Sequence record: OR258281.1
Reading direction: 5' to 3' (one strand)
DNA length: 64,000 bases
The notes beneath the pieces were generated by a model. It was given only the letters and a program-made list of their open reading frames with translations. It was not told the origin of the DNA and ran no database searches. Below, piece after piece: positions 29,584 through 51,724 of this stretch. Position 1 is the first letter of the stretch; each line of letters starts with the position of its first letter. The position numbers were made by a program, and so were the translations under genes.

Positions 29584-30233
29584 TGGCTATTCGTCATATT
29601 GGTGTTATTAAAAATACCGGGTCTTCAGTATTTGTAGTTTATCGTAAACTACCAGATAATGATGGTAAGTGTCTTATCCTATATCGTGATTCTCTTCCTG
29701 ATGTTTTTTCACATCGTATAGTCAGTACCGTTGAAGGAAAGGGTCAGCGTTCAGTAGATCTATTTGAAGTTATGAATGAAGAACGCCTTGAAGGTCGTCA
29801 TATGCTAACTGCACTTCATAACCATGGACTACTAAAAGCTGTAGATACCTCTACTGTTGTTATGCATGTCGGCGGTAATCAAACTATTCGCCTTGATGAA
29901 CTCAATAACATTATTGATTCTGAAATGAAAATCCAAGGTGATAATGTTAAGAAGTACAATCCATTTGATATGGGTAGTGCTGAAGCTAAAGATGCATTGG
30001 AAGACCGTGGATTAGTACATCGTCTTACTGAGCAGGCCAAGTTTCATCATGAAGAAGCAGTTAAGCTTTTCGAACGTATTGCTCAAATTGATGAATCATT
30101 AGTACCTAATGAATTTAAAACTGCGAAAAGTACCAGTTCTACTAGTGTAGAACTACCAGAAGGTATTTCTCAGACTAAAGCAATCGAACTAGTCAAGAAA
30201 GCCTTGAAAGAACGTGAAAATAAAGATGAGTAA
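29583..30233 (+). CDS. Hypothetical protein
   Basis: 216-aa ORF with a coupled start. Confidence 0.7.
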   Translation: MAIRHIGVIKNTGSSVFVVYRKLPDNDGKCLILYRDSLPDVFSHRIVSTVEGKGQRSVDLFEVMNEERLEGRHMLTALHNHGLLKAVDTSTVVMHVGGNQTIRLDELNNIIDSEMKIQGDNVKKYNPFDMGSAEAKDALEDRGLVHRLTEQAKFHHEEAVKLFERIAQIDESLVPNEFKTAKSTSSTSVELPEGISQTKAIELVKKALKERENKDE

Positions 30234-30540
30234 TATAAGTCGTGATTTAATTGTCAAGATGATAGTTGAAGAAAGACTAAAACAATTAGACAGTCCTAAT
30301 AGTACTAATGATTCTTTATTAACGAAGAATGACTGGACTGCTAAAATTGGGTATTATCTTTATAGTACTGCATCTAGACCAGATAAACATATTTCCTTTG
30401 AAGAATTTCGTGAGTCTTTGATTACTGTGGGTGCATTAGTACTAAGTGCACTCGAAAATAGTTATGAACACGAATCAAATAAGGAAATAGATGAACTATT
30501 GGATAAAATAAAAAATGACGGACAGAGTGGAACTCTTTGA
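30226..30540 (+). CDS. Hypothetical helical protein, weakly MazG-like
   Basis: DW...FRESLITVGALVLSALE resembles MazG-like helices, but the acidic catalytic motif is not evident. Confidence 0.4.
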   Translation: MSNISRDLIVKMIVEERLKQLDSPNSTNDSLLTKNDWTAKIGYYLYSTASRPDKHISFEEFRESLITVGALVLSALENSYEHESNKEIDELLDKIKNDGQSGTL

Positions 30541-31123
30541 GTCTTTACTAAGTGCATCATTACAATCTAATAATGTATGTTATAGCGGTGGAGCCAAAGG
30601 CTCTGACCGCTTTTTTGGTATATGGGCCGCTGAAAAAGGTCATGATGTACTACATTTTGGGTTTGATGAGCATAGCTATAAAGGTCACGATAAATTATTA
30701 AACGTACCAGTACCGGATGTACTATTACAATCTAGTACTATTAAAGATAGTTTAATAAAAGCTAATTTAAAACTAAAACGCAAAGTCCCAAGCTGGGGTT
30801 ACGTATATAAACTTCTGGCACGTAATTCTTACCAAATACTACATACTGAACGTGTTTATTGTATGGTTGAAGAAGTTAATAAAGACACTGTAAGTGGTGG
30901 TACAGGTTGGGCGGTTCAGATGTACATAGATTCATGTCCTGAACCGGAATTATATGTATACAATATTCATACCGATAAGTGCTATCAGTATGAGGTTAAA
31001 CAAAAGAAATTTGTTGAAGTACTACATGTACCAGAACCACACGGAAAGTGGACAGGTATAGGAACACGAAACTGTGTAATTCAGCATCTAAAGAAATTCA
31101 GTTCACGCTTTATCAAGGAATGA
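30515..31123 (+). CDS. SLOG-superfamily-like (YspA/DprA-type Rossmann) protein
   Basis: YSGGAKGSD, LLARN and SGGTGWA motifs. Confidence 0.55.
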   Translation: MTDRVELFESLLSASLQSNNVCYSGGAKGSDRFFGIWAAEKGHDVLHFGFDEHSYKGHDKLLNVPVPDVLLQSSTIKDSLIKANLKLKRKVPSWGYVYKLLARNSYQILHTERVYCMVEEVNKDTVSGGTGWAVQMYIDSCPEPELYVYNIHTDKCYQYEVKQKKFVEVLHVPEPHGKWTGIGTRNCVIQHLKKFSSRFIKE

Positions 31124-31126
31124 TAA

Positions 31127-31402
31127 ATGGCAAATGTCACAACAACTACTGGTGGAACCATTACAGTTAATGGTGCTATTAATGCATCAAGTTACAATTC
31201 GGGAATTTATGGTAGCCATACACATAATTGGGTAGGTAATTCTCCAGCAAAACAATGGATTAAAATTAATCAAGATAATGAAATTGAACTTGATAATGGT
31301 GATCGAATTGCAGTAGAAGAGTTAGTAAGTACCTTTAAGTACCTGAAAGAAGAACATCCTAACGTATTTGCAGACCTTATTTTAAAAGGCATTATAAAAT
31401 GA
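31127..31402 (+). CDS. Hypothetical protein
   Basis: 91-aa ORF with AAGGA Shine-Dalgarno. Confidence 0.55.
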   Translation: MANVTTTTGGTITVNGAINASSYNSGIYGSHTHNWVGNSPAKQWIKINQDNEIELDNGDRIAVEELVSTFKYLKEEHPNVFADLILKGIIK

Positions 31403-31752
31403 ATTTAGATTCTCAGAGTTATCAGGAAGGATTTGTTGACGGGTATAATGAAGGTTTTGATAAGGGTTTTAACTCTGGTTATGATACCGGTCATGATAAC
31501 GCCAGAAATGAAATTACTGAATATTATGACTCTGAAATTTTAGAACTAAATTATAAACACGGTTATGAATTACAGGAAGTGCGTGAAGAAGTAGAACGGA
31601 ATATTACTGACAAGTTTCACAGCAAAATTGATGAATATCTAAGAGTAATTGAACTACTTAAAACCGAACTGAAAAATACTACGGAAAATTATTATACTCT
31701 AAGGAAAGAGCATGAAGCAATACAACGACTTATTACAAAAAATTCTGAATGA
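31399..31752 (+). CDS. Hypothetical protein with GYxEGF repeats and a coiled coil
   Basis: YQEGFVDGYNEGFDKGFNSGYDTGHD, then a helical tail. Confidence 0.55.
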   Translation: MNLDSQSYQEGFVDGYNEGFDKGFNSGYDTGHDNARNEITEYYDSEILELNYKHGYELQEVREEVERNITDKFHSKIDEYLRVIELLKTELKNTTENYYTLRKEHEAIQRLITKNSE

Positions 31753-32626
31753 AGGTATCGAGTGTAAGGATCGTACTGGTGTAGGTACAATCAGCCTTAT
31801 CGGACAGCAAATGCGTTTTAATTTAAGCGAAGGATTCCCGGCTGTAACTACTAAACGCCTTGCATGGAAATCAGTAGTATCTGAATTACTGTGGTTTATT
31901 GAGGGAAGTACCAATGAACGCCGCCTTGCTGAAATTTTACATGGTGATAACGTTTCAGATGATAAAACTACTATCTGGACAGGGAACTATAACAAGCAAG
32001 CGAAAGACTTAGGATATAGTGGTGGTGAACTAGGTTCAGTATATGGTGAGAACTTCCGTAAATGGCCTTCTTATGAGATTTTAGAAGCAGGTAGTGTTGA
32101 GAGTACTGCTAATGGTGAAATGCTCTACAAAGACGCTGTAGTGCGTAAAAAGTACGTAGACCAGGTACAGGAACTGATTCACGGACTTATTCATGATCCT
32201 GATTCACGCCGTCACATTATTACTCTATGGAACCCAAGTACTATGGATAAGGCTGCTTTACCGGCCTGTCACGCATTCTCGCAGTACTTTGTGAAGAATG
32301 GTAAGCTAAGCTGCCATTTGTATCAGCGTTCGTGTGACGTGTTCTTAGGCGTTCCATTTAACATTGCATCCTATTCACTATTCACACATATGCTTGCACA
32401 GGTATGCGGATTGGAAGTCGGAGAATTTATCTGGACGGGTGGTGATGTTCATATCTATTCAAATCATGTTGAACAGGTAAAAGAACAGTTACTACGTGAA
32501 CCAAAAGAATTACCAGAATTGTACATTGATAAAAGTGTAGAAGATATTGAAGGATTTACGATGGATTCATTCAAACTACTGAATTATGATCCACATCCTA
32601 CTATTAAAGCACCAATGGCAGTATAA
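31712..32626 (+). CDS. thyA: Thymidylate synthase (ThyA type), no intron
   Basis: DRTGVGT, ELLWFI, PDSRR, ALPACH, YQRSCDVFLGVPFNIASY and GDVHIYSNH. Confidence 0.97.
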   Translation: MKQYNDLLQKILNEGIECKDRTGVGTISLIGQQMRFNLSEGFPAVTTKRLAWKSVVSELLWFIEGSTNERRLAEILHGDNVSDDKTTIWTGNYNKQAKDLGYSGGELGSVYGENFRKWPSYEILEAGSVESTANGEMLYKDAVVRKKYVDQVQELIHGLIHDPDSRRHIITLWNPSTMDKAALPACHAFSQYFVKNGKLSCHLYQRSCDVFLGVPFNIASYSLFTHMLAQVCGLEVGEFIWTGGDVHIYSNHVEQVKEQLLREPKELPELYIDKSVEDIEGFTMDSFKLLNYDPHPTIKAPMAV

Positions 32627-32628
32627 AC

Positions 32629-32656
32629 AAAAAAGGAGCCTAAAGGCTCCTTTTTT
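32629..32656. terminator. Bidirectional terminator
   Basis: A-run, ggagcc-taaa-ggctcc, T-run, between convergent genes. Confidence 0.85.
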
Positions 32657-34802
32657 ATTGGGAAATAACACAACGTCCATTGAATCTTAAATCGGTAGTA
32701 CTTGGTATTTTAATAGTTACGGTAGTTCCTGTAATATTAACAGTATCAACATCAACTAAGTTGTATGATGAATCTGCTTGTAGTTCATAAACCTGTACCA
32801 TCTTAGCATTAGCAATTGTGTATTGAATCTGATAATAACCAGAATTTAGTACCCAATCGGTAGTGCTGAACGTATTAGTAGCACTAGTACCTATTCTAAC
32901 CCATGTGCCTGCAATCTTCTGTATTGTACTATTAAGATCAGTACTATATGCAATCATTCCATCTTCACCAACACTATTATTAACTGGTGAAAGTACTGGA
33001 AGTTTAATACCATAACGATTGAATTTAGTACGTACAGTAGACCCGTCTAAAATAGAAACATCATCGTATGAACTCATATTCAAATCAAAGGATGTGCTAC
33101 TCTTAGCAATAACAATAGGATTTGTACCCTGGAATGTCAATGTTGCACTTGGTGCAATTTGAATACCTAAGAAATTATTAATAGAATTACTGAAGGTACT
33201 ACTAGCTTGAACATTAAATGTATCGCTAGAATTGTCACCTAATACCGTGTTTCCTTTTACTAAGAAGTTCCCATTAATAGTTGCATTATTTGTAAAAGTA
33301 CTAGCTGCATTGACTGTCAGTGTATCAGTGTTTGCATCACCTAATACCGTGTTACCATTAACAGTAAGATTATTAACCTGAACGTCAGAGAATGTTGCTG
33401 GTGCATTAAAAGTACTGGTAGCATTAACTACTAATGTATCACTTGTAGCATCACCAAGAACACTGTTGCCGTTAATCTGCAAATCACCAAGTGATTGTAG
33501 TTTTGTATTGGAAAGAATAGTACTTGTGCCTGTAACCGTACCATAAAAAGTAGTAGCAGATGGTGCAAATGAAATATTCACCGAACCGTTAGATACGAAC
33601 TGAATACGGTTGTTAACTGCATTGATTCCTAAACCAGTATTACTTGTATTAGAAAACACAATATTCGGAGCAGAGTTTGAAGCAGAACTATCAGTACTGA
33701 TAATGAACTGAGTCGGGCTAATTCTGAATTTCTCTGAACCTGATGCAGTGAATCCAATACTTCCGGTAGCAGGATGGAATAAACCTGTAGTATTATCAGA
33801 CCATTTAGAAGGATCTGTTCCTGGGTTATTAATTGCATCGAATGCATTATTATTGAAGGTTAAACTTGGAGAACTTGCAGAACCATATACAATACCAAAA
33901 CGACCAGTACCTGTTCCACTGTTAACCATTGAGTCACCAGTGCGTTGTAATGTATTCTGTATTAATGAATCTACTACAGTTTGCACAGTACCGGATGGTT
34001 GGTCAGCAAGTATGCGGTTATTACTGTACATCAATGTTTTATCGAATACAACTGCACCAGCAAGAATACTTACTCGGTTATTACGTTGTGCATTCCATTT
34101 TACTGAACTGCCAATAATGAAATCACCATCAGCTAGACCTTTTTCTGCACCAATGTTATTGGCAGTATCAAAGGGGTCAGTAAGATTAAGATCAGTACTT
34201 AATGATAATAGTCCTTCGTGTCCTGTAGCCGGTATTTGGTCTTCAATAATACGTGCAAAAGCGTAGTTTACCATTTTAGCTGTAGGTGTAACAGGGTCAG
34301 TACCAAAATAGTACTTAATCTCTAACCAGTTTCCCGCTCCACTCGGATTAGTTGGAGTAAAAGTAACTGGTGATGTACCAGTTGGATTGGCTTTAAGATG
34401 TGTAGTTGCTGCATCATAGATACCACGAATAATGTAGTAGTCACCACTAGTAGTAGCATCGGGTGCAGGTAATTTATCATATACGCCAGCGGTAACTGGA
34501 GGATCTATATCATCAGAAAGTGGTGCATAAGTACCGATATAGTCTAATCCAGAAGTAATGGAATCCGGTAATTGTGAAGTTGATAGTCTTCCATGTTCGT
34601 CTAGGTTAGGGAATCTGCGATATGCAATTGAATCATCGGTGAATTGTAAAGTACCTTCAAATGCCTGTAATTCATTATTATAACGAATCATACCCGGACG
34701 TTTTGTTTCCGTAGTCTGTGCAGTATCTGCTTTAGGTAATTCAAGATATTTTTTACTTTCAATTACAACCCCATCTGAACCTTTAATTCTAGTTGTGCTC
34801 AT
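32655..34802 (-). CDS. Virion structural or fibre-associated protein
   Basis: LELPK...GMIRYN N-terminal motif, GNTVLGDAxxDT beta-repeats, late motif upstream. Confidence 0.65.
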   Translation of the reverse strand: MSTTRIKGSDGVVIESKKYLELPKADTAQTTETKRPGMIRYNNELQAFEGTLQFTDDSIAYRRFPNLDEHGRLSTSQLPDSITSGLDYIGTYAPLSDDIDPPVTAGVYDKLPAPDATTSGDYYIIRGIYDAATTHLKANPTGTSPVTFTPTNPSGAGNWLEIKYYFGTDPVTPTAKMVNYAFARIIEDQIPATGHEGLLSLSTDLNLTDPFDTANNIGAEKGLADGDFIIGSSVKWNAQRNNRVSILAGAVVFDKTLMYSNNRILADQPSGTVQTVVDSLIQNTLQRTGDSMVNSGTGTGRFGIVYGSASSPSLTFNNNAFDAINNPGTDPSKWSDNTTGLFHPATGSIGFTASGSEKFRISPTQFIISTDSSASNSAPNIVFSNTSNTGLGINAVNNRIQFVSNGSVNISFAPSATTFYGTVTGTSTILSNTKLQSLGDLQINGNSVLGDATSDTLVVNATSTFNAPATFSDVQVNNLTVNGNTVLGDANTDTLTVNAASTFTNNATINGNFLVKGNTVLGDNSSDTFNVQASSTFSNSINNFLGIQIAPSATLTFQGTNPIVIAKSSTSFDLNMSSYDDVSILDGSTVRTKFNRYGIKLPVLSPVNNSVGEDGMIAYSTDLNSTIQKIAGTWVRIGTSATNTFSTTDWVLNSGYYQIQYTIANAKMVQVYELQADSSYNLVDVDTVNITGTTVTIKIPSTTDLRFNGRCVISQ

Positions 34803-34833
34803 TAAAAAATCCTCAGATCGTGTTTATATTACT

Positions 34834-34840
34834 TATTTAT
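34834..34840 (-). promoter_or_regulatory. Late promoter motif ATAAATA
   Basis: TATTTAT on the + strand, about 30 nt upstream of the minus-strand start. Confidence 0.65.
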
Positions 34841-34856
34841 TTGGTACTGATAAAAT

Positions 34857-34881
34857 AAAAGCCAGTCTAAAAGACTGGCTT
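34857..34881 (-). terminator. Rho-independent terminator
   Basis: aaaagccagtc-taaaa-gactggctt; the A-run gives a U-tail on the minus strand. Confidence 0.75.
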
Positions 34882-34890
34882 AGTTTATTG

Positions 34891-36933
34891 CTATTTTGAA
34901 AGAGTTATTTTGTACAATTGACCATTAATGTAAATCGGTAATTGGTTATTAACAACGTCAACGGTACTTAAACCGATATATCCGTCAGAACCAACAACGA
35001 TACCATTTTTTCCAGCAGCAATACATAGTTGTGCTGGTGCTTGTACTAATCCACTAATCTTATTAAAATCGGCATCAGCGATATTAGTTCCTGCTGGAGT
35101 CCAGCGGAAACATACACCTGCGTTGTAACGATCTTTGGAAGTACTTTCAACGATTGAAATACAATTCATTACCCATGGTCCAAGCTTCACGTATACAGCA
35201 CAATCAGTTTTGTTATTGGAAGCAACGTACATTACATCCTGAACTGCGGTTGCACCTGAAGATTCCCAAGTTAATTGTACTCCTGAATTTTTCTTCTGAG
35301 CACGAATAATACTTTCGCCACCACCGAATCCTGCACCACCAACTTTGTGCTCAACACCAACACTACTGAAACCCAAAGTACCGATAATGCGAATATTAAC
35401 AGTATCACCATCATTAGGAACAAAGAGGTCACCCACTTTTACCCATCCTGCATTAGCTTGACTGTTTCTGAAACGGTTTTCTGAAGTTAAGAAACCATAA
35501 TTCATTGCACCAGTAGTTTTGATACCGAAGTTTTCAATCTCAGTATTACCATCTTCCCATATAGATAACCAACGAGTTTTGGTACTATCGGTAGTAGTAA
35601 TTGAAGAAGCACCTTGAAGGTTTTTCTGAGATAAAATATAACGACAGTAAGTTAAATTCAATGGTGTAGTACAGTCTTCCATACTTAATGCTTCAATTAC
35701 CCATTGACCATTAGATAGATCGCCAGGAGTTGTAGTCTTTTCAATCCAACCATTACGTAGAATAGATTGAGTACAACGTTGAATATCAAATACTGGAGTT
35801 GGGCCGGTACAACTTTGAATATTGAAGTTACTTAGTTCGATTGCAGTACTATGATCCCATGAACCAGTAGCAGAACCACTCCAAGTAGCTTTTACAATAC
35901 CACCAGTACAGTTACCAGCATAGAACTGGTCAATCTTGGTATCTAATGTATCTACTAATTGCAGTGCATAACCACCTAGACGTTGAAATAGCATATTCTG
36001 CACACGAACAAACTGACCTTCAATACAGGTATTTTGGAAGAACCCTTTGGTGTTAGCCTGCTTATCAATTTCGCCATTTACATAGAAGTTTGAAATTTCA
36101 GTCCAACGTGCTTTAACTTTTACCATTACGTCACTTCCGCGATCTGATACAAGGTAAGTAGCAGGGAAATAACCATAAGAAACCATCGCACCAACCATAC
36201 GGAAGTTAGCAACTTGGCTTGCTGAAAAATCAACAGAATTGATTTTAAAAGTACCAGCAGGGAATTGAATACCAATACGTGGATAGTACTTCTGACTCCA
36301 CTTGAACATTGCCATTACAGCAGCAGAACAATCAGTTTTGCCATCAGGAATTGCACCGAAGTGGGTTACGTTAACTAAGTTAGGATCGCTAACAATACGC
36401 TTCCATCGTGCACCTTTAGCAGTTACAATAACCATACCGCCATCATCAGCACTGGATTTATCAGTACTGTCATAAAAGAAGTCACCGCCACCGAAAGTAC
36501 TTGCGGTAGAACAACTTTTCACACTCGCTTTGGTTAAAGTAACAGAAGGTTCTGTTTTTCTAAGGTTAGAAAGCACATCAACTTGGAAAACGTTACCAGA
36601 AGTAACAACTGTAGTAGCTGCTGAACTCACCTTAGATTGAGCAGCAGTTAAAGCTTGATTAGCAATTGTATTAGCAGATTCAGCAAGTTTCTTTGCTTCT
36701 GCTGCAACGCTATTAGCTGAGGTAATTAAAGCTGCAAAATCAGCTTCAGTACCAGTATACCCTTTTTCTTTTGCAATATCATAAGCACTTTTACCAGCAG
36801 TGCTAGGCTGGACATAGTAACCATTATCCTTTTTCACAAGGGCGTTACCCGCATCCGGGCTTACGCTAATGTCAAAAGTCATCCCATCCAGATCAATTGT
36901 ACCATTGATCTTTGCATTCCCACTATAACTCAT
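34891..36933 (-). CDS. Tailspike/depolymerase, AmsF/WceF-like beta-helix protein 1
   Basis: VTHFGAIPDGKTDC, GIQFPAG, DTLDTKIDQFY, WDHSTAIELSNFN and NGWIE...PGDLSNGQW. Confidence 0.75.
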   Translation of the reverse strand: MSYSGNAKINGTIDLDGMTFDISVSPDAGNALVKKDNGYYVQPSTAGKSAYDIAKEKGYTGTEADFAALITSANSVAAEAKKLAESANTIANQALTAAQSKVSSAATTVVTSGNVFQVDVLSNLRKTEPSVTLTKASVKSCSTASTFGGGDFFYDSTDKSSADDGGMVIVTAKGARWKRIVSDPNLVNVTHFGAIPDGKTDCSAAVMAMFKWSQKYYPRIGIQFPAGTFKINSVDFSASQVANFRMVGAMVSYGYFPATYLVSDRGSDVMVKVKARWTEISNFYVNGEIDKQANTKGFFQNTCIEGQFVRVQNMLFQRLGGYALQLVDTLDTKIDQFYAGNCTGGIVKATWSGSATGSWDHSTAIELSNFNIQSCTGPTPVFDIQRCTQSILRNGWIEKTTTPGDLSNGQWVIEALSMEDCTTPLNLTYCRYILSQKNLQGASSITTTDSTKTRWLSIWEDGNTEIENFGIKTTGAMNYGFLTSENRFRNSQANAGWVKVGDLFVPNDGDTVNIRIIGTLGFSSVGVEHKVGGAGFGGGESIIRAQKKNSGVQLTWESSGATAVQDVMYVASNNKTDCAVYVKLGPWVMNCISIVESTSKDRYNAGVCFRWTPAGTNIADADFNKISGLVQAPAQLCIAAGKNGIVVGSDGYIGLSTVDVVNNQLPIYINGQLYKITLSK

Positions 36934-36987
36934 AATAGGCTCCTTTTAACTATATCCAGATTGTAATACAGGTTCTTCCTGCACAGC

Positions 36988-36994
36988 TATTTAG
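36988..36994 (-). promoter_or_regulatory. Late promoter motif CTAAATA
   Basis: TATTTAG on the + strand, upstream of tailspike 1. Confidence 0.55.
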
Positions 36995-37004
36995 TTGTAC
37001 TAAT

Positions 37005-37032
37005 AAAAAAGCCTCCATAAAGGAGGCTATTT
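37005..37032 (-). terminator. Rho-independent terminator
   Basis: A-run, gcctcc-ataaa-ggaggc. Confidence 0.75.
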
Positions 37033-37035
37033 TAA

Positions 37036-39543
37036 TTAACTAGTTGGACGCCAAGTACTATTAGATGGGTCCGACATTAAGTACCAAGTTGAACCATTAG
37101 AGAACAGTGGTTGCAATGGTTGTGCTAAAGTCGTATTTCTGCAAAGTACCATACCATATACGTTAGTACTAGGGGATGGTAAATCAGCATAAGCATATAC
37201 TGGAATACGAATTGATTGGTTAGTCGCCTGTAATGGAATATACTGGTCAACACCATAGAACGATACCTGTAAGTGTCTTGAAGCAGCATTATCTACATAA
37301 GTAGAGTTCAATACTACTTTACCAGAATCTAAGTCCATTCCAATACCAGGAGCATCATAATCTCCTGAGTTGATAGCCCAACGCTTAACAGCAGTTGCAA
37401 TATTACTTACAGCTAGTACTTCATCTTCTGTCATAATAATATTATCGGCTCTTAGCCAAAATGGGTTACCAGTTTGAAGACGAGATGTACCATTACATTC
37501 TAAGAACACTGCTGCTGATTTAGTGTAAGAACCCATTTTAACATATACAGTACAATAACCCCATGAGTGTAGATACTTAACTGCTTTAATAGGACATGAA
37601 CCTTCACCATACCAATGCATTTCGCCGGTAGTAGTATTTTGTGATGATGGAGATTTACTTTCAAAATAAATCGTAGCATTACCGCCGCCAAAGTTAGTAC
37701 CTGCTGGTCTGACTAATGCACTATTTGCACTATCCCAACCGTTAGTACCTAAAATATTCATTTTCCAAGTACTACCCTGACCTTGTGTGCAAATACGACC
37801 TACTTGTACCCACTGTTCAGCGTTAGAACTGTTAGTAAGAATTAGGTTAGAATATTGGAATTCGTTAGAAATACCACAATCAAATTTAGCACCAGCGGGT
37901 TTTATTTCAACAACACCTTGGTCATATCCATTTGTTACCCATGAAGGCATATTACCAGAACCACCATTGGCTAAATCCATATCCTGTGTATATCCAGAAA
38001 CAGTATTGTCTAGTCCTTTACCTTGTTCCCAACGACAGTTTATTTGTACTAATTTACTATATTGAATACCTGCTGGATTAGTAGCGTTTTCCATTGTAAT
38101 ATTATCAAGCGTCCAACCACCCTGAGAAATGTCAAATGGATATTCACAGTGGTCAAACCAACCATTATACATCATTGACTGACCAGCACGAATTGCACTT
38201 ACTGCATATTCATTTTTGTGGGAGTTAAAGTTGAAGTTACTAATTTCAATAGCAGTAGGGTGATCCCAAGAACCCGGAGATAAGTTAGACCAAGTTACCC
38301 ACAGGAATGCAGCATTACCGTTATAAGAATAGATTTGGTCAAACTTACAGTCCAATGTATCAATTAGCTGGAATGCACGACCGCCAATGTAATCAGTACG
38401 AATACTGTGTACACGTGCGAATGCACCGCGTGTAACTGTATTCTTAAAGAACGGCTGAACTGTACCAGTACCTAATAAACGTAAGTTTGATACTTCCATA
38501 CGACGAGCACAGAAGGTAAACATTGGAGTAGTTTGAGTCTTACTGAATGGTACTAAAGTAGCAGAAACTAAGTGACCATAAGCACGTTCTGGACCACGAA
38601 TTTTAAAACTTGAAATTTCGGCAGTACCCAAATCAACAACATCAACCGCAGTACTCCCAGCAGGAAGAATTACACCCGGTCCAAAGTTTCCACCAGTAGC
38701 TAATGACCATTTATGCATTTTGATAATGGCAGCAGCATCATCAGTTTTACCATCACACATTGCACCAAAGTGAGTAATATCTAAGTCATCAACTGCTGGG
38801 GTTGCACGTCTCCAACCACCTTTACTATCAACACGGAAGAACAAACCACCATCTTCAACGGTACTGGTATCAGCAACATAATAGAAATTACCACCACCAA
38901 TATTAGTACCAGCATTATAACCACGTACTGCTACAACTGGATTTGCTAAAGTTGGTTGCATTGTTTTAAGAGTAGCAATAGAATCAATACTATTAGCAAT
39001 AGTTAGATTGTAATAGTTTTGTGCGTTAGTTGCACTTGTTGCGGAGTTGGTTTCTGAAGTTTTAGCATTAGTAGCACTGGTAGCTGCTGCGGTAGCTGAA
39101 CTTGCAGAATTAGTTTCAGAGGTTTTAGCATTAGTCTCTGAAGTTTTGGAGTTAGTTTCAGAGGTTTTAGCATTTGAAGCGTAAGTACTTGCAGATGTTG
39201 CAGAACTTGCAGAATTAGTTTCTGAAGTTTTAGCATTATTCTCAGAGGTTTTAGCATTTGTTTCAGAAGCTTTCGCGTTTGCAGCACTAGTACCAGCAGC
39301 AGTTTCTTTTGCAATGTAATCAGACAAAGTACCCGGATAACCCTGTTCCTGTGCTAATTCATATGAACTTTTACCTGGAGCACCCGGTTGACTAGGAGCA
39401 ACATAATAACCATTATTAGTTTCAATTAACGCATTATCAGCTTGCGGATCTAATTCTATACTACCAACAATATTACCAGTTACACTGAAAGTACCGTTTA
39501 CATTCACATTACCTTGTACTTTTAAATCACTGTTTATATCCAT
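37036..39543 (-). CDS. Tailspike/depolymerase, AmsF/WceF-like beta-helix protein 2
   Basis: ITHFGAMCDGKTDD, DTLDCKFDQIY and WDHPTAIEISNFN; paralogous to tailspike 1, with an added coiled stalk. Confidence 0.75.
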   Translation of the reverse strand: MDINSDLKVQGNVNVNGTFSVTGNIVGSIELDPQADNALIETNNGYYVAPSQPGAPGKSSYELAQEQGYPGTLSDYIAKETAAGTSAANAKASETNAKTSENNAKTSETNSASSATSASTYASNAKTSETNSKTSETNAKTSETNSASSATAAATSATNAKTSETNSATSATNAQNYYNLTIANSIDSIATLKTMQPTLANPVVAVRGYNAGTNIGGGNFYYVADTSTVEDGGLFFRVDSKGGWRRATPAVDDLDITHFGAMCDGKTDDAAAIIKMHKWSLATGGNFGPGVILPAGSTAVDVVDLGTAEISSFKIRGPERAYGHLVSATLVPFSKTQTTPMFTFCARRMEVSNLRLLGTGTVQPFFKNTVTRGAFARVHSIRTDYIGGRAFQLIDTLDCKFDQIYSYNGNAAFLWVTWSNLSPGSWDHPTAIEISNFNFNSHKNEYAVSAIRAGQSMMYNGWFDHCEYPFDISQGGWTLDNITMENATNPAGIQYSKLVQINCRWEQGKGLDNTVSGYTQDMDLANGGSGNMPSWVTNGYDQGVVEIKPAGAKFDCGISNEFQYSNLILTNSSNAEQWVQVGRICTQGQGSTWKMNILGTNGWDSANSALVRPAGTNFGGGNATIYFESKSPSSQNTTTGEMHWYGEGSCPIKAVKYLHSWGYCTVYVKMGSYTKSAAVFLECNGTSRLQTGNPFWLRADNIIMTEDEVLAVSNIATAVKRWAINSGDYDAPGIGMDLDSGKVVLNSTYVDNAASRHLQVSFYGVDQYIPLQATNQSIRIPVYAYADLPSPSTNVYGMVLCRNTTLAQPLQPLFSNGSTWYLMSDPSNSTWRPTS
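39015..39290 (-). repeat. Heptad (21-bp) NAKTSET repeats, lambda Stf-like stalk
   Basis: NAKASETNAKTSENNAKTSETN... in the translation; recurring gaagttttagcatt on the + strand. Confidence 0.85.
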
Positions 39544-39580
39544 AAAATTAATTTCCCTTTAATTTGTATTGTTTTCCTGA

Positions 39581-39587
39581 TATTTAT
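39581..39587 (-). promoter_or_regulatory. Late promoter motif ATAAATA
   Basis: TATTTAT on the + strand, upstream of tailspike 2. Confidence 0.6.
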
Positions 39588-39611
39588 CATGTACTTGATA
39601 AAAATAAAAAG

Positions 39612-39640
39612 AAAAGCCGGGTATTATCCCGGCTTATTTT
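39612..39640 (-). terminator. Rho-independent terminator
   Basis: aaaagccggg-tattat-cccggctt. Confidence 0.8.
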
Positions 39641-39641
39641 A

Positions 39642-40277
39642 TTATAGTGCAATACCATCCCATGTTGCGGCGGTACGTGCTTCTTCATATGTAGTTGCAG
39701 CATCAATAGCAGCTTTAAGGCTCCATGATGTTTGGTACTGTGTATTAGTGAACGCGAATAAAGCCAAAGTAAAAGCTTTGAATTTATCAGCATCCATTGG
39801 AACATTAACATCATCCATAGTACGCCATACGAAATCGCTTGTAATAACGTCTATATCAGATAGAATGGCAACCTGAGCACCAATAATATTCATTACAGAA
39901 ATTTGGTCAGTTGCATAAATGTGACTGTCGTATGTAAATCCGCTGTTTAGTACTTCAGAACGTTTTGAATCTACACGATTTTTAAGGTCAGCTTTAATAT
40001 CATCCAATGGCATTAATTCATATGTATAGGTATTGGTTACTACTGCTGTTTCTTCATCGAAAGTAATAACTTTCTCTTTGAATAGCATATATTCACCTTG
40101 ACCTTCATATACATCTTCTTGAGTCCAGAAACCTTCAGCAATACGAGTAGCTAGATCCAATCTAGTGATATCACCATAGGTGATACCACTATTTCCGCGA
40201 ACGTTAACTGGATTAGTTATAACTCGTACAATACTAAAAGAACCATCATCATTTTTAATTACGTACAAATATAACAT
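39642..40277 (-). CDS. DUF4376-like tail fibre assembly protein
   Basis: C-terminal KRSEVLNSGFTYD...WRTMDDVNVPM...LKAAIDAATT...W pattern, directly after a fibre gene. Confidence 0.7.
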   Translation of the reverse strand: MLYLYVIKNDDGSFSIVRVITNPVNVRGNSGITYGDITRLDLATRIAEGFWTQEDVYEGQGEYMLFKEKVITFDEETAVVTNTYTYELMPLDDIKADLKNRVDSKRSEVLNSGFTYDSHIYATDQISVMNIIGAQVAILSDIDVITSDFVWRTMDDVNVPMDADKFKAFTLALFAFTNTQYQTSWSLKAAIDAATTYEEARTAATWDGIAL

Positions 40278-40291
40278 ATTTTATTTCCCTA

Positions 40292-43200
40292 TTATGGACG
40301 TTGTGCAATAAACACATCGTACTGAGTACCAACACCACTATATACAACCTGACAAATGCTCACTGAGTTCGCAGTAGTATTAACGGTGCCACCAATGATT
40401 GAATAGTTAGTAGCCCAAGTTACAGCATGACCACCAGTACTATCTTGAGTGATGTAGAAGAACCATGAACCACCGCTATTTGCAGGTACGTTTGCAATTG
40501 CCTGAATTGCTGTATCAGCAGCTACAGTAATTGGATAAATGTTACTTGTTCCATCTGGAGTCCAAGTAGAAGTACTTACTGTTTGTGCTGCATGTGGGCC
40601 AACATAGTAAGAGTTCGTTTTGAACGAAGAAGTAACAACGTTAGACAAGTTAGCAGTGAAAGTACCGTTAACTGTTAAGTCCTGAACTGTAGTTGCACCA
40701 GTTACACCTAAAGTACCACTTAGAGTACTGTTACCAGAAACACTCAGAGTGCTTGCGGTTAGTCCTGCTAGAGTAGTTGCACCAGTTACGCCTAAAGTAC
40801 CACCAAAAGTACTATTACCACTGAAAGTACCAGTAGTTGCACTTAAAGCTTTAAGAGTAGTTGCACCAGTTACACCTAAAGTACCACCAACTGTTGTGTT
40901 TCCTGAAATATTTGGAGCACCGGTAATAGTACCAGTTGAACCTAATACTAAAGCAGCACTTCCGCCAATAGTAATGTTTCCGGTTGTAGTGGTGAAACTC
41001 TTAGCACTAACATCAGAAGTACTCTGATCAAGTGTACCAATAATTTTACCGTGTACTGTAAAGTCACCGGATGTTACTGCGTTACCGTTGATTTGTAGGT
41101 TATTATTAGTACTTCCACTTGCACCTAGTACAGCACTTGCAGCAGTTAAGGTAGTGCTGGTTGTAATACCTTGTGCAGCAGTAATTGTTCCACTTGCAGA
41201 GATATTACGTGGTGAAATATCACGAGATGTTAGGTCAATTGACGAGTTGATAGTACCAGTACAAGTAATGTTACCCGTGAATAATGAATCACCAGTTACG
41301 TTAGTTACATAGTTAGCATTATGTGTTGCACCACCAACTAGAACCTCGGTACTTGCAATTGTCTTAACAGTAGTACTTGCACCATTTACAGTTAAATTAC
41401 CACTTAATGTAGTTGCACCAGTTACACCTAAAGTACCACCAACTGTTGTGTTGCCACTAAATCCGCCAGTAGTTGCACTTAATGCATTGACAGTAGTTGT
41501 AGTACCGTTAACGGTTAAGTTGCCAGTTAATGTACTGTTGCCTGTTACCCCTAAAGTGCCACCAACTGTTAGGTTTGTACCGATGGAACCAATACCTGAT
41601 GTTGTAACACTTGCAATTGATAAATCAGCAGAACCTAAGTTTAAACCACCGCTTGGCGTTAGGGTTCCAGTAACAGTTACGTTATTTGCAAAAGTAGTGT
41701 TGCCATTAATAGTTGGAACTGTTAATGAAGTTGCAGTTACACCAGCTAAGGTAGTTGCACCAGTTACTCCCAAAGTACCACCAATTGTGGTGTTCCCTGA
41801 AATAGCAGGAGAACCAGTAATAGTGCCAGTAGTTAGTTTTAGTGCACCACCTACAGTTGCATCACCAGAACTGTTGATTGAAGCTACTGATAGATTAGTT
41901 GCACTTAGATCAAATGAGCCATCAACTGTTAGATCGCCAACAACATGTGCGTTACCATTAGAAACTAAAGATTTTACAGTTACATCAGTGGTACTTAAAT
42001 CAAGAGAACCAGGAGTTACTTTACCAGAAACCGTTAAGTCGCCAGTAATAGACGTATTCTTAGCAATTGCTACAGTACTGTTTGTAGAAGTAATGTTGCC
42101 ATTAAAGGTTGCATCACCAGTACTAGTTAAAGTACTTACAGTAGTTCCACCAGCAGTTAAACCAGCAACAGTACTTGTACCATTTACGGTTAGATTTCCT
42201 GAAGAAGTAATGCTTGTAGCAGTCACAACACCTAGAGTACTTGTACCATTAGCAGTCAATTTAGTAGTACTTACTTCTACACTACTTAGCTTAGGAAGTA
42301 CTGAAGCGTTAGTTGTATCAGATACAGTAACAACACCAGAAGTACTAAGTGATTTTGCACTAATATCAGCAGCACTTAGGTCAAACGTTCCGTCAACAAT
42401 TAGATCGTTTCCAACATGAACATTTCCAGTAGTTGAAAGTGATTTTGACGCAATATCAGTACCACTTAGGTCAATACCACCTGCACTTAATGTTCCAGTA
42501 ACCGTTAGGTCATCTGCCATAGTTACTTCAGAGGTAAAGTTTACTGGACTTGAGCCATTACCAATACTTGGTGAACTAACTGAACTTGCACTTACTGAGT
42601 TGGCGGTAACTGCTCCAGTAGTGGTAACGCTTGCAGATTGTACTGCACCAGTACTGCTCAACGAGGCAACCTGTACAGTCCCTGCTGTTACGCCAGATAG
42701 GGTACTTGCACCAGTTACTTTTAGAGTACTTGCAACATCTACTGAATTCGGCTTAATATCAAGACCATCAACGTTTGCAGTTGCGGTAACACCAGTAGTA
42801 GTACCAGTAACAACTAAATCTTTAACAGTAACGGTTTGACCATTTACAGTTAAGTTACCACTTAATGTACTTGCACCAGTTACACCTAATGTACCTGCGA
42901 CACTGGCATTACCAGATGAATTTAATGAAGTAGCTGTTACAGTTCCAGCGTTAACGGTTGCTAAAGTACTTGTACCAGATGCGTTTAGAGTAGTAGTGGT
43001 CACTCCAGCAGTAGCTTTTAATGCTGATTTAAAGTTACCAGTAACTGACAGATCACCACCAACAGTACTGTCACCCGTAGTAACTACAGTCTTAGGTTTA
43101 ATATCTAGTCCATCAACGTTAGCAGCAACAGATACACCAGTAGTAGTACCAGTAACAACTAAGTTGTTAACTGTAGTAGTACCTGAAGAACCATTTAATG

Positions 43201-44146
43201 ATGCATCACCGGCAACAGTAATTTTACCACCTACGGTAGCATTACCTGTAGTACTTGAAGTTGCTGAACCAACATTTGTAGTAGCGGTTACTGAATTAAC
43301 ATTGATATCCTGACCAGAAAGATCAACACTAATACCGGTTACTGTACCAGTTACTTCTAGATCTTTTAATGTAGTTTTACCAGCAACAGTTAGTTGTGAT
43401 TTACTAGGAGATGCAGTACTGTTACCAGTAATGTTTAGGTAGTCAATCTCACCGATACCATCAACTTTAAGACCTGGATTTGTAAAGTTCACATCACCAA
43501 CAGTAATATAGTCAGAATCTACATTATTACTGTTAAGAACAGAAGTTGTCATTTGATATGGAGATACAGTACTCTTTAAGTCTGAAGGGCGAGTATTGTC
43601 GGTGTATGTAAACTGAACCTGTGAAGTCTGGTCAGATAGTGTTACACTTTTTAGAGTTGCTGGAGTTTGCAAACCTGTTAGTGAACCAGTACCAGTTAAT
43701 ACAGTATTACCCGAAATGGAGATATTTTTGGTACTTGTATTATTGGTAACCGTTACGTTGTTGAATTGTCCTTGATCCTGACTAAAAGTACCACCTAGTG
43801 TACCATTAATTACTACATCATTAAGAGTAGCAGTTCCTGTACTAGTAATATCACCAGTGATCACTTCACCATTAACTGTAACATTTCCACCAACTGAAAC
43901 ATCACCGGTAGTTTCCATTGTTGCAGTTTTAACATCTTTAACTGAAAGAACTGTGTTTGCACCAGTAAGTGAACCAGTGAGATTAAGATCCCCGTTTAAT
44001 GTAATTTTTGTAAAAGTCGCGTCCTTGAATGATACTGAACCATTAACCGTCATGTTACTAGCAATTACTGCACTGCCGCTTATAAGAAGGTCTTTGGAGA
44101 TAGTACCATTACCAGTTACGATTATATCTGTATTAATAGGATACAT
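40292..44146 (-). CDS. Long tail fibre-like protein (1284 aa, T/G/V/S-rich beta repeats)
   Basis: Recurrent VGGTLGVTGATTL and DLSxxDIxxKS units; C-terminal globular domain. Confidence 0.7.
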   Translation of the reverse strand: MYPINTDIIVTGNGTISKDLLISGSAVIASNMTVNGSVSFKDATFTKITLNGDLNLTGSLTGANTVLSVKDVKTATMETTGDVSVGGNVTVNGEVITGDITSTGTATLNDVVINGTLGGTFSQDQGQFNNVTVTNNTSTKNISISGNTVLTGTGSLTGLQTPATLKSVTLSDQTSQVQFTYTDNTRPSDLKSTVSPYQMTTSVLNSNNVDSDYITVGDVNFTNPGLKVDGIGEIDYLNITGNSTASPSKSQLTVAGKTTLKDLEVTGTVTGISVDLSGQDINVNSVTATTNVGSATSSTTGNATVGGKITVAGDASLNGSSGTTTVNNLVVTGTTTGVSVAANVDGLDIKPKTVVTTGDSTVGGDLSVTGNFKSALKATAGVTTTTLNASGTSTLATVNAGTVTATSLNSSGNASVAGTLGVTGASTLSGNLTVNGQTVTVKDLVVTGTTTGVTATANVDGLDIKPNSVDVASTLKVTGASTLSGVTAGTVQVASLSSTGAVQSASVTTTGAVTANSVSASSVSSPSIGNGSSPVNFTSEVTMADDLTVTGTLSAGGIDLSGTDIASKSLSTTGNVHVGNDLIVDGTFDLSAADISAKSLSTSGVVTVSDTTNASVLPKLSSVEVSTTKLTANGTSTLGVVTATSITSSGNLTVNGTSTVAGLTAGGTTVSTLTSTGDATFNGNITSTNSTVAIAKNTSITGDLTVSGKVTPGSLDLSTTDVTVKSLVSNGNAHVVGDLTVDGSFDLSATNLSVASINSSGDATVGGALKLTTGTITGSPAISGNTTIGGTLGVTGATTLAGVTATSLTVPTINGNTTFANNVTVTGTLTPSGGLNLGSADLSIASVTTSGIGSIGTNLTVGGTLGVTGNSTLTGNLTVNGTTTTVNALSATTGGFSGNTTVGGTLGVTGATTLSGNLTVNGASTTVKTIASTEVLVGGATHNANYVTNVTGDSLFTGNITCTGTINSSIDLTSRDISPRNISASGTITAAQGITTSTTLTAASAVLGASGSTNNNLQINGNAVTSGDFTVHGKIIGTLDQSTSDVSAKSFTTTTGNITIGGSAALVLGSTGTITGAPNISGNTTVGGTLGVTGATTLKALSATTGTFSGNSTFGGTLGVTGATTLAGLTASTLSVSGNSTLSGTLGVTGATTVQDLTVNGTFTANLSNVVTSSFKTNSYYVGPHAAQTVSTSTWTPDGTSNIYPITVAADTAIQAIANVPANSGGSWFFYITQDSTGGHAVTWATNYSIIGGTVNTTANSVSICQVVYSGVGTQYDVFIAQRP

Positions 44147-44186
44147 GTTCCCTCCGTTGGATTAATCGGAATAGCTTTATTTGATG

Positions 44187-44193
44187 TATTTAT
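44187..44193 (-). promoter_or_regulatory. Late promoter motif ATAAATA
   Basis: TATTTAT on the + strand, about 40 nt upstream of the start. Confidence 0.6.
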
Positions 44194-44226
44194 CCATAAA
44201 GTACCTAATATTATAAGGATAGAAAT

Positions 44227-44259
44227 AAAAAAGCCCTGAATATATTATTCAGGGCTTTT
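44227..44259 (-). terminator. Rho-independent terminator
   Basis: aaaaaagccctgaata-tat-tattcagggctttt. Confidence 0.85.
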
Positions 44260-44261
44260 CA

Positions 44262-47200
44262 TTAATCTAATTTTTCTACAACCATTGTAAAACCTTGATA
44301 AGTATTGAGTATTGAACTAGACATATATGAACAGCATATGTTTTGTCCTGCGGCAACACTTACAATTTCGCAAAAAGAAACGTTACTAATTGTATTGACA
44401 GATAATGCATCGATGCGGTATGCTGCACCACTTATTGAAGTTCCTGCACCTAAACCTACACCAAACTGATGACCACCGTTAATCAAACCGGCAGTTATCA
44501 TCGCAGTACAAGTTACTTTATATAATCCAGCAACTGCAACACTGACTCCAGTTGTATTACCAGTATATAACGAGGTATTACCGGTTACTGTCATTGCAGA
44601 GTTAGCGGTCATTGGACCAAATGCAAGTAATGATGCTTTGTTTACAGTATTATAACAGCTTACACGAGCAGCGTTATTCACACCACCCCAAGTACCATTA
44701 GCCTTAAGCATATGGTTGTGACTGTCAGCAATAGATGGTGCAGGTACTAAGCCAATTGACCCTGCTGCACTTGAAGTACTTCCAGTAAAGGTTCCACTGA
44801 ATGTATCAAGTTTAGATTTATCTGCTGCACTCATCAAACCAGATGTAGTGCTATTAGCATTATACATAGCAGTCTGTGGTTGCCAGATTGCAGTATTAGT
44901 GCCGTTAGCTATAAGGATATGTCCTGCTACTGGTGAACCACTGACGCTTATACCGTTGATTCTAGACACTACTGGAGCGGTTGCAGTACCACTTAGATCT
45001 CCAGATAAAGTAATGTTACCTGATGTGGTTGTGGTGGCTGGAACGTTAGTTACAATATTACCTGAACCTAGTAAACTTGTACCATTGATGCTTTTTATAT
45101 TAGTACCAGATATCAAAGTACTTTGCTTAGTATCAATCTGAGAACTTAATATAACACCTTGATTGGCACTTAATGGTCTTGAACTTGAAACGGTAGTTAA
45201 ATTATCAACAATATCTGAAATATTAACTTTATTAGACAAAATTACACTAATAACCGCACCCTGATTAGCACTCAATGGCTTATTTGGGTTTGTACTGGTT
45301 AAACTATCAATAATATCTGAAGTATTAACTTTTGTTCCAATTAATGTATTAAGAACCGTACCTTGTCTAGCACTAAGAGGGAAGATAATACTGGTACTTG
45401 TTAATGAATCAACAATATCAGCAGTATTAATCTTAGTACCGATTTTATCATTAAGAACTTTACCTTGATTTGCACTGAGTGCCTGATTGGTAGTTGTAAG
45501 TGTTACACTATCAATAATATCACTTACATTCAGCTTAGCTTGTACTTGATTGTTAAGAATCCTACCTTGATTTGCACTAAGTGGAGCACTAATTGATATA
45601 CTTGTCAGGTTATCAGTAACATCCGATATATTAACTTTGTTACTTAACGCAGTATTAATAACACTACCCTGATTAGCACTCAAAGGAGCAACAGTACTGG
45701 TACTTGTTAAAGAATCAACAATATCAGCAGTGTTAATCTTTGTATTAATTGAAGCTTGAAGTATTTTACCTTGTTTAGCACTTAGTGGAACCGTTGAATT
45801 TGAGCTTAACAGGTTATCAACAATATCTGAAGTACTAACTTTAGTGCTAATTAAACCGTTTAGAACGTTACCCTGATGTGCACTCAATGCTTTATTTGTA
45901 CTTACATCAATAAGGTTATCTACAACATCAGAAATATTAAGCTTAGTTCCTACCATTGAGCTTAAGATATATCCCTGATTTGCACTTAGAACCGAAGATC
46001 CCGATGTACTGGTAAGATTATCAACAATACTACTTGTTCCGATCTTCTGATCAAGTAAATTGCCGATTATGTAACCTTGATTAGCACTAAGAGCTTTTGA
46101 TGGTGAAGTATTCAATAAGCTATCAACAACATCAGTACTATTAAGTTTTAACTGAATATTAGAGCTTAATACTCTACCTTGATTGGCACTTAATGGCACA
46201 GATGTGCTTGTACTATTAAGATTATCAACTATATCATCAGAATTAGACTTATTAGCAATTAGTCCAGCTAAAATACGACCCTGATTTGCACTTAAAGGTT
46301 TGTTTGCACTATTATCAGATAAGTTATCCACAATATCAGATGTGCTTGCTTTAGTTGCAATCAAATCATTAAGTAAAGTACCCTGATTTGCACTTAGTGG
46401 TAAAACCCCTGAAGTACTGCCAATTGTATCAACAACATCAAGTGGAGTAATTACAGATTTGTATGTTCCGTCACCAAAGAATGCTTTGTTGTTATCACCA
46501 GCTTTAGGAGAAGGTACGTTTCCTGCAATCCCCGGTGAAGTTAAAGTACTTCCTACCATAATAGCAGTAGCTTGTGGTATTAGCGTAAAATTATTAAGAT
46601 TAGTTGGGGTACTTGGGGTATCAGTATTACAAAATAGTTCATCACCTGCATTATAAGTCTGACTACCAATTTTACCAGAAGCATTTGCTTTCCAAAAGTC
46701 ACCGCGAACTGAACCAGCTAATGCGGTTAGTGTATTCGGCAGAATGCCTCTGAAAGAACCTTTCTGTAGAGTATTGAAGTTTTTAAGCTTAGTAACATCA
46801 ATATTTGCAACATCAGCAGTAATATTAAATGTGTTATCAAATGCTAAACCAGTACCAATACTTACTGAAACTTTACCTTGTGAGTCAACATTTAAACCAT
46901 TGTGTGGTATAATAGTACCAGCAACAGTTGACGTGGCTAGTGGATTTATATTTGTTTCAATACTAAAGTAATCAGTTGAATTAATGGTTGTGACTGTACC
47001 GGTAGTCCTAGTACAAACTATTTTATCACCAATATTAAAGCTAATCCCATCAAGTACACCAGCAGTTTCTGCTTTCCAGTATGAATTTCTTACTGCATTA
47101 TTAAATTGTGATACACCTGCACCAAAATTAATAGAACCCATGAATGTACCATTCATTAATTGGTCTACGTTATTAAGCGAAAGCACATCTAAACGTTCAT

Positions 47201-48986: not shown

Positions 48987-49000
48987 TTACTATCTCTCCA

Positions 49001-49873: not shown

Positions 49874-49905
49874 CGATACATCTCCTAAAAAGGTTTCGTT
49901 TGATG

Positions 49906-49912
49906 TATTTAT
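49906..49912 (-). promoter_or_regulatory. Late promoter motif ATAAATA
   Basis: Divergent pair with 49948-49954. Confidence 0.6.
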
Positions 49913-49947
49913 TCCATATTAGGCGTAAAATACCATGTAAAATAGAC

Positions 49948-49954
49948 ATAAATA
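49948..49954 (+). promoter_or_regulatory. Late promoter motif ATAAATA
   Basis: 28 nt upstream of the ART-like gene. Confidence 0.6.
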
Positions 49955-49982
49955 TTATATAATTTTCAAAGGAATATAGAAT

Positions 49983-51701: not shown

Positions 51702-51724
51702 CTGGTATTCTGTACAGACGGACT

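Follow-up and report, generated by a model that had tools for sequence, protein, structure and literature searches.

Xanthomonas phage XaC1 (OR258281.1; 348,967 bp) is a jumbo myovirus from irrigation water in Mexico with Xanthomonas vesicatoria as its recorded host, published in 2024 (PMC11273794). We analysed a window of 64,000 nucleotides of this record, in whose numbering all coordinates are given, and focused on two adjacent open reading frames of the tail-fibre module, ORF297 and ORF298, which very probably encode two separate tailspike depolymerases. The stretch searched is 100% identical to XaC1 over 6.5 kb, and no sequencing runs were listed for the 4.6 kb that hold the two genes. In the record, ORF297 is entered as 'prophage tail fiber N-terminal domain-containing protein' and ORF298 as 'EPS depolymerase' (EPS, exopolysaccharide). 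Only ORF298 is named in the XaC1 paper, as an 'EPS depolymerase' with a pectin-lyase fold (PMC11273794). The two genes and the predicted parts of their products are located as follows.

34891..36933, minus strand: XaC1_297 (ORF297, P0001), 680 amino acids, predicted tailspike depolymerase of the AmsF/WceF and jumbo-phage subfamily (intact reading frame, phrog, 6TGF, Foldseek, tree)
36709..36933, minus strand: ORF297 residues 1-75, putative N-terminal attachment module (…NALVKKDNGYYV…), then a GKSAY…GYTGT motif
34969..36591, minus strand: ORF297 residues 115-655, predicted neck, right-handed beta-helix, triple beta-helix and beta-sandwich, aligning with WceF 167-699
37036..39543, minus strand: XaC1_298 (ORF298, P0002), 835 amino acids, predicted tailspike depolymerase of the classical Dpo (phiEa1h/L1) subfamily (intact reading frame, phrog, 6TGF, Foldseek, tree)
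39304..39543, minus strand: ORF298 residues 1-80, the same putative N-terminal attachment module as in ORF297
39043..39299, minus strand: ORF298 stalk, tandem 21-nt (7-amino-acid, NAKTSET-type) repeats with a 105-nt higher-order period
37447..39000, minus strand: ORF298 residues 182-699, predicted neck, beta-helix and beta-sandwich, aligning with WceF 166-662
37039..37446, minus strand: ORF298 residues 700-835, additional beta-rich C-terminal domain, outside the WceF alignment and common to phiEa1h/PEp14-type Dpo

Judged by sequence comparison, both products belong to the AmsF-WceF-Dpo family of beta-helix glycanases. The phrog_4250 family ('EPS depolymerase') matched nearly the whole length of each protein, at 4.7e-189 for ORF297 and 4.8e-199 for ORF298, and PF27114 ('Phage_tail_beta') is the precomputed annotation for the family in both. 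Our own Pfam scan, run with a copy of Pfam that does not hold PF27114, gave only a weak match to PF12708, and the NCBIfam scan of the spike proteins returned nothing meaningful. When PDB sequences were searched, the sole strong match of either spike was 6TGF, the WceF protein of Pantoea stewartii, with E values of 4e-130 for ORF297 and 3e-62 for ORF298 over the ranges listed above. Identity to AmsF/WceF is 37-42% for ORF297 and about 26% for ORF298. Likeness to AmsF/WceF, which a sequence-only reading of this DNA had proposed, was thus borne out by these searches, and it spans WceF residues 166-699 rather than the full length. The domains of WceF have been delimited as head (34-146), neck (166-229), beta-helix (236-514), triple beta-helix (517-531), sandwich (531-667) and stem (678-736) (PMC7949094). 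Together with the alignment ranges, these limits show that the shared part runs from the neck through the sandwich and, in ORF297, also takes in part of the stem.

The same relationship was recovered from predicted structures. AlphaFold2 monomer models had a mean pLDDT (predicted local distance difference test score) of 86 for ORF297 and 75 for ORF298, with the core mostly above 90; the mean of ORF298 is lower because its stalk drags it down. Foldseek searches with these models placed 6tgf first in both cases (E 6e-50 for ORF297 and 1.4e-39 for ORF298), and the next matches stood at about 1e-12, so that WceF is ahead of other tailspikes by over 25 orders of magnitude. Both models thus predict a WceF-like fold composed of a neck, a right-handed parallel beta-helix and a C-terminal beta-sandwich.

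ORF297 and ORF298 align with each other at 29% identity over about 700 columns (E 1e-87). All five motifs that had been singled out from the sequence (HFGAxxDGKTD, DTLDxKxDQ, WDHxTAIExSNFN, NGW and WVxVG) are present in both, and this sharing is far beyond chance. We scored residue conservation on a family alignment of 60 sequences, in which the Asp, Glu and His residues of these motifs vary little or not at all. D328, D331, D335, D360, H361, E366 and E419 (ORF297 numbering) are kept in at least 53 of the 60 sequences, and all of them are found in ORF298 too. A further invariant Glu sits downstream of the named motifs and is retained in both XaC1 spikes. In total, 12 conserved Asp/Glu/His positions are present in the two proteins, with a single E-to-D change, in ORF298.

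At the N-terminus, the module spans the first ~45 residues (…NAL…K.DNGYYV) and is followed in both spikes by GKSxY…GY.GT. When residues 1-78 of ORF297 were searched against the complete 349-kb XaC1 record, they matched only ORF297 and ORF298, the latter at 45% identity. The module is also kept in the depolymerases of uncultured XaC1-like phages from metagenomes, regardless of which catalytic module lies downstream. These comparisons identify it as a putative lineage-specific anchor common to both spikes. A helical stalk occupies residues 63-104 of the ORF297 model; the stalk repeat of ORF298 is a generic fibre-shaft repeat found in many unrelated tail fibres, and phrog tail-fibre matches cover its residues 78-178. 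Neither N-terminus contains an RR motif or a hydrophobic signal peptide, and the PF09008 head-binding domain was found in neither protein. Bacterial AmsF/WceF members start MKRR…ALSV, a signal of the Tat (twin-arginine translocation) type, and WceF carries a P22-type head-binding domain (PF09008) behind its Tat signal (PMC7949094). That a phage anchor takes the place of the export signal, as had been read from the sequence, therefore stands, with the nuance that WceF has a phage-type anchor of its own, and a different one.

To place the two spikes among their relatives, we built a quick tree of the core from 78 rows and a careful, unrooted tree from 50 rows, in which support is given as ultrafast bootstrap / SH-aLRT (Shimodaira-Hasegawa-like approximate likelihood ratio test). 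The careful tree falls into two deep clades split at 100/100, with ORF297 and ORF298 on opposite sides. ORF298 lies in the classical Dpo clade (14 rows, 100/100) with phiEa1H, Nifs112 and PEp14, from which ORF297 is excluded. ORF297 lies in a 100/99 clade of XaC1-like phage proteins, within the side that holds AmsF/WceF and the jumbo phages. Bacterial AmsF/WceF and Bdellovibrio proteins form a single 100/100 clade that excludes both XaC1 spikes; this clade is sister (100/98) to the enzymes of Erwinia jumbo phages (Ea35-70, AH06, Ea277G) and is nested among phage lineages.

Pairwise comparisons agree with a separate history for each spike. The best matches of ORF297 are full-length, at 56-63% identity, and come from metagenome contigs of ~349-356 kb that represent uncultured XaC1-like phages; its core is 60-69% identical to spikes of such phages. 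In one lineage of relatives (L002-L005), the corresponding slot holds one depolymerase, and the spike retained is the ORF297 orthologue. In two others, the 349.8-kb contig L095 and L096, both spike genes are adjacent as in XaC1, and the L096 cores are 96% identical to that of ORF297 and 89% to that of ORF298. For ORF298, the best core matches (68-74% identity) sit behind PF26208, the N-terminal domain of phiTE gp241, in myovirus tail modules. Its named relatives (PEp14, Pavtok, Nifs112, LIMElight and phiEa1h Dpo) share 39-44% identity over residues 186-829, and tblastn alignments to classical Dpo proteins extend to residues 821-830.

The sequence-only reading had taken the pair for two diverged copies and had proposed that such genes were exchanged between host EPS loci and phages. 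Local duplication, with or without recent uptake of one gene from a host ams/wce locus, would be in keeping with two adjacent genes on the same strand that share an N-terminal module and motifs, and ORF297 is indeed slightly nearer to bacterial AmsF (40-44%) than to the enzymes of cultured Erwinia phages (~38%). However, the two cores are only 27-30% identical, they fall on either side of the 100/100 split, and each has closer relatives elsewhere; ORF297 and ORF298 are therefore not diverged local copies. Uptake from an EPS locus is opposed by the bacterial clade, which leaves out both XaC1 spikes, and by the lack of Tat signal and PF09008 in either protein. We consider duplication or such uptake highly improbable. 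Instead, the sequences indicate that the pair comprises putative catalytic modules of differing ancestry on one common anchor.

As for exchange with the host, the core tree shows no sign of a recent event between XaC1 and a host EPS locus, and this part of the proposal falls away; what remains is the nesting of AmsF/WceF among phage clades, which fits an old capture from phage. Capture of a phage tailspike by Erwiniaceae has already been speculated on in print (PMC7949094). The phylogeny thus bears on the direction of transfer through this nesting, and because the tree is unrooted, the direction itself is something we infer. The bacterial AmsF/WceF proteins would then fit an old capture from phage and not an exchange with XaC1.

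The trees also brought up further bacterial members of the family. AmsF-like genes (P0016, P0023, P0028 and P0036) are present on the chromosomes of Bdellovibrio sp. HCB209, HCB274 and HCB185ZH (L022, L068, L076), with two copies in one strain, and their products have a homologous Tat-type signal (MKRRQVLQSAASS…ALSV) without a head-binding domain. In this predator, the Bdellovibrio protein may act as a capsule hydrolase that was derived from prey (or is shared). In the quick tree, Bdellovibrio appeared nested inside the Pantoea AmsF group; the careful tree supports the joint clade only and not that order. In addition, many Pantoea and Erwinia genomes encode a second paralogue of ~610-635 amino acids without signal peptide or head domain (P0083, P0091, P0029, P0050; L051, L058, L062), and these paralogues form their own 100/100 clade.

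The spike genes lie within a tail-fibre module with the order ORF301 (1574 amino acids, 11 phage fibre repeats), ORF300, ORF299, ORF298, ORF297 and ORF296. Their neighbours and the intergenic elements are the following.

40292..44146, minus strand: XaC1_300 (ORF300), 1284 amino acids, tail fibre protein of the same module (record; its L095 homologue has PF26209)
39642..40277, minus strand: XaC1_299 (ORF299), 211 amino acids, DUF4376, 'virion structural protein', next upstream of the depolymerase slot in every relative seen
32655..34802, minus strand: XaC1_296 (ORF296, P0003), 715 amino acids, fibre-like structural protein, downstream of both depolymerases
39614..39635, minus strand: terminator-like hairpin between ORF299 and ORF298
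39581..39595, minus strand: AGTAC-N4-TAAATA motif upstream of ORF298
37010..37028, minus strand: terminator-like hairpin and T-run between ORF298 and ORF297
36988..37001, minus strand: AGTAC-N3-TAAATA, late-promoter-like, upstream of ORF297
34834-34881, minus strand: hairpin, then AGTAC-N3-4-TAAATA, upstream of ORF296

Jumbo phages of the GAP32/CBB/RaK2 type have ORF296 as a conserved structural protein. The homologue of ORF300 in the metagenome relative (L095:2938-6663) carries PF26209, the C-terminal domain of phiTE gp241, and at two loci (L106/L107) the closest catalytic modules to that of ORF298 follow PF26208. Taken together, the two phiTE-gp241 domains point to modules having been shuffled among jumbo phages like XaC1 and myoviruses like phiTE. 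After ORF296 comes thyA, on the opposite strand and intact in XaC1 at window positions 31712-32626. In L095 (14269-15515), thymidylate synthase is called as two pieces of 78 and 206 amino acids, ~390 nt apart, and this thyA may be split by an intron in the manner of T4 td.

Upstream of ORF296, ORF297 and ORF298 alike stands a GC-rich hairpin with a T-run, and after it comes AGTAC-N3-4-TAAATA, 45-55 nt ahead of the start codon. This motif has three matches in the window, all at these three genes, and the TAAATA-type element resembles the T4 late-promoter consensus TATAAATA. The hairpin-then-ATAAATA layout is also present in the relatives L003, L095, L096 and XbC2, and a hairpin of the ORF298-ORF297 type matched rho-independent terminators in Erwiniaceae genomes. 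With its own hairpin and late-promoter-like motif, each of ORF297 and ORF298 appears to be a separate late expression cassette, and the same layout probably also frames the spike genes as exchangeable units.

We conclude that ORF297 and ORF298 are very probably two separate virion-borne tailspike glycanases of the XaC1 tail-fibre module that cut capsule or EPS. The N-terminal module would dock each spike on the phage tail, followed by an alpha-helical stalk, which measures ~40 residues in ORF297 and in ORF298 consists of heptad repeats over ~100 residues, and then by the neck domain. The predicted right-handed parallel beta-helix would bear the conserved carboxylates of DTLDxKxDQ, WDH and AIExSNFN and the later invariant Glu. 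By analogy with solved or assayed relatives, the spikes are presumably trimeric and virion-borne, and as in phiEa1h, L1, RAY Dpo and WceF they would act as hydrolases on a capsule or EPS of acidic heteropolysaccharide, similar in kind to amylovoran/stewartan, and release repeat-unit oligosaccharides. Such cleavage would let the particle tunnel to the outer membrane. Catalytic modules from two anciently separated subfamilies would thus be joined to the same anchor, and the presence of two subfamilies on one phage suggests that XaC1 most likely carries two different glycan specificities. Weighing against two specificities, one and the same polymer is cut by enzymes from different subfamilies, WceF and that of phiEa1h: both hydrolyse stewartan to repeat units, the phage enzyme much faster (PMC7949094).

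Several points weigh against this assignment of function. The AlphaFold2 monomer models give the N-terminal anchor low confidence. The WceF paper names no catalytic residues (PMC7949094), and the active site is placed at the conserved Asp/Glu/His residues by our inference. The activity and virion location proposed for the XaC1 spikes are carried over from their relatives, and at 38-44% identity to assayed enzymes the substrate would not be readable from sequence. One could also suppose that a single spike is an active enzyme and the other a lectin-like binding spike without catalysis. ORF297 falls on the WceF side of the tree, and WceF, its nearest solved relative, is far slower than the phiEa1h tailspike and agglutinates with stewartan (PMC7949094). 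On the other hand, the conserved acidic and His positions are all retained in both proteins, which speaks for activity of both XaC1 spikes. Experimental confirmation has been reported for the phi-Ea1h, L1, Bue1 and RAY depolymerases (PMC10194208), RAY being a jumbo-phage member of the subfamily of ORF297. Moreover, the ORF297 orthologue is kept at 96% in L096 and is the spike that single-spike relatives have kept. A non-catalytic partner spike is thus improbable in our view, and we favour two active glycanases.

The sequence-only reading had expected an Erwinia- or Pantoea-like host. The record and the paper say X. vesicatoria (PMC11273794), whereas all sequence evidence favours an Erwiniaceae-type bacterium. 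Among 50,697 phage records, the depolymerase family occurs in phages of Erwinia (102), Pantoea (16), Serratia (9), Xanthomonas (3) and few others, and XaC1 and DIBBI are the only Xanthomonas phages that have it. We searched ~185,000 species genomes for bacterial homologues by an alignment-based scan, and the best 80 of 234 come from Pantoea, Erwinia, Mixta, Izhakiella, Buttiauxella and metagenome-assembled genomes of Enterobacterales, plus Bdellovibrio; none of these 80 is from Xanthomonas. Homologues of ORF296 were found only in phages of Enterobacterales, besides XaC1 and XbC2. Phage XbC2 (OP292654.1), isolated on the same two strains as XaC1, has no depolymerase in this slot, and its fibre module (L108:8829-15905) is 86.5% identical in DNA, over 99% of its length, to that of the Erwinia aphidicola phage Kaldavass. 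The depolymerase gene of vB_XveM_DIBBI (L010:1141-3699) shares 96.7% DNA identity with that of the Pantoea agglomerans phage vB_PagM_PSKM.

From these relationships, we consider it somewhat better than an even chance that the natural, perhaps even the actual propagating, host of XaC1 is an Erwiniaceae-type bacterium and not Xanthomonas; the recorded X. vesicatoria host may be a misidentified Erwiniaceae strain. Two results speak against this. In print, the host is X. vesicatoria, of which three strains in five gave plaques (PMC11273794), and no CRISPR-spacer or other direct link to Erwiniaceae was found in a search that carries little weight, as it took in a portion of the phage and sampled genomes (window positions 30001-50000 against four named genomes, and 32700-52699 against 301 genomes from the family of Pantoea agglomerans). 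DNA matches in Erwiniaceae genomes were confined to coding similarity of thyA and of amsF-like genes and to rho-independent terminator hairpins.

It is less likely, and on balance rather unlikely, that the host is truly X. vesicatoria, that the spikes cut a Xanthomonas surface glycan and that a jumbo lineage of enterobacterial type crossed into Xanthomonadales; the glycan would then be an O-antigen, the capsule of particular strains, or an EPS resembling amylovoran that some X. vesicatoria strains have acquired. Such a host would accord with peer-reviewed isolation and a spot-test host range on X. vesicatoria strains (PMC11273794), with the occurrence of the family in both XaC1 and DIBBI, independent phages that bear an X. 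vesicatoria label, and with the narrow range of three strains in five, as expected of a capsule-type-specific spike. Set against it are the XaC1 paper, which does not say how strains XvA and XvB were identified (PMC11273794), the lack of Xanthomonas among the best 80 bacterial homologues, and the host range of the backbone relatives, all others of which infect Enterobacterales. The close matches of the XbC2 fibre module and of the DIBBI spike to those of Erwinia and Pantoea phages also count against it, as does a phage GC content of ~35-38%, 30 points below the ~65% of Xanthomonas (PMC11273794). The more specific scenario, in which some X. vesicatoria strains bear an amylovoran/stewartan-like capsule and the Enterobacterales jumbo lineage jumped order by means of two Erwiniaceae-type depolymerases, seems to us clearly unlikely, and an Erwiniaceae-type host remains our preferred reading. 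We note as a side observation that many gene notes of DIBBI cite Erwinia or Pantoea homologues, so that it is a second 'X. vesicatoria' phage with the look of an Erwiniaceae phage.

The host question has practical weight, as XaC1 and XbC2 have been proposed as biocontrol agents against tomato bacterial spot, and both resemble Erwinia and Pantoea phages in the receptor-binding genes and throughout the backbone. Should the strains used for propagation be yellow Erwiniaceae that were misidentified, Xanthomonas will not be controlled by these phages. If they are genuine Xanthomonas, this is a rare cross-order host jump worth studying, one that would have been borne by receptor-binding modules despite the 30-point GC gap. 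Both enzymes are in addition candidate anti-biofilm reagents, and the pair offers a clean natural case of a single anchor module bearing catalytic modules of two deep subfamilies.

The family, its tailspike fold and the AmsF/WceF link were already established (PMC7949094, PMC10194208, PMC9915841), and the similarity of phage depolymerases to AmsF/WceF and the model in which the N-terminus anchors and the C-terminus cleaves are both in the literature. New here is that ORF297 is recognised as a second depolymerase and assigned to the other subfamily; neither the record nor the paper had identified it as such. Also new are the putative shared lineage-specific anchor, the two-spike cassette conserved in uncultured relatives, and the documented conflict with the recorded host.

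Compared with WceF of P. stewartii (6TGF; PMC7949094) and AmsF of Erwinia amylovora, the XaC1 spikes share the neck, the eight-rung right-handed beta-helix with its N-terminal helix cap, the triple beta-helix, the sandwich and the motifs. WceF/AmsF has a Tat signal and a P22-type head-binding domain, is encoded in the wce/ams EPS operon and acts as a slow, biofilm-remodelling enzyme, whereas the XaC1 spikes have another N-terminal anchor and a coiled-coil stalk, ORF298 has the extra C-terminal domain, and both are encoded in a phage tail-fibre module and not in an ams/wce polysaccharide cluster. The Dpo proteins of the Erwinia podophages phiEa1h and L1, with PEp14 and the Pantoea phage Nifs112, make up the subfamily of ORF298, C-terminal domain included; these EPS depolymerases are associated with the tail and cut the backbones of amylovoran/stewartan. 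They differ in their virion adaptors, starting near the neck or with other N-termini, and in belonging to phages of 45-60 kb with one spike each.

On the AmsF side, the spikes of Erwinia jumbo phages (Ea35-70/RAY group, PhiEaH1, Kwan and AH06) are 36-39% identical to ORF297 over ~85% of its length; they form a clade apart from that of ORF297, with other N-termini and on unrelated phage backbones. None of the Erwinia jumbo phages examined has spikes of both subfamilies side by side. CBA120, with TSP1-4, and the Klebsiella phages RaK2 and K64-1 likewise carry several beta-helix depolymerase spikes of differing specificities mounted through N-terminal adaptors. A likeness to the CBA120 tailspikes lies in the neck domain (PMC7949094), whereas the N-terminal module of XaC1 differs from the adaptors of both CBA120 and RaK2.

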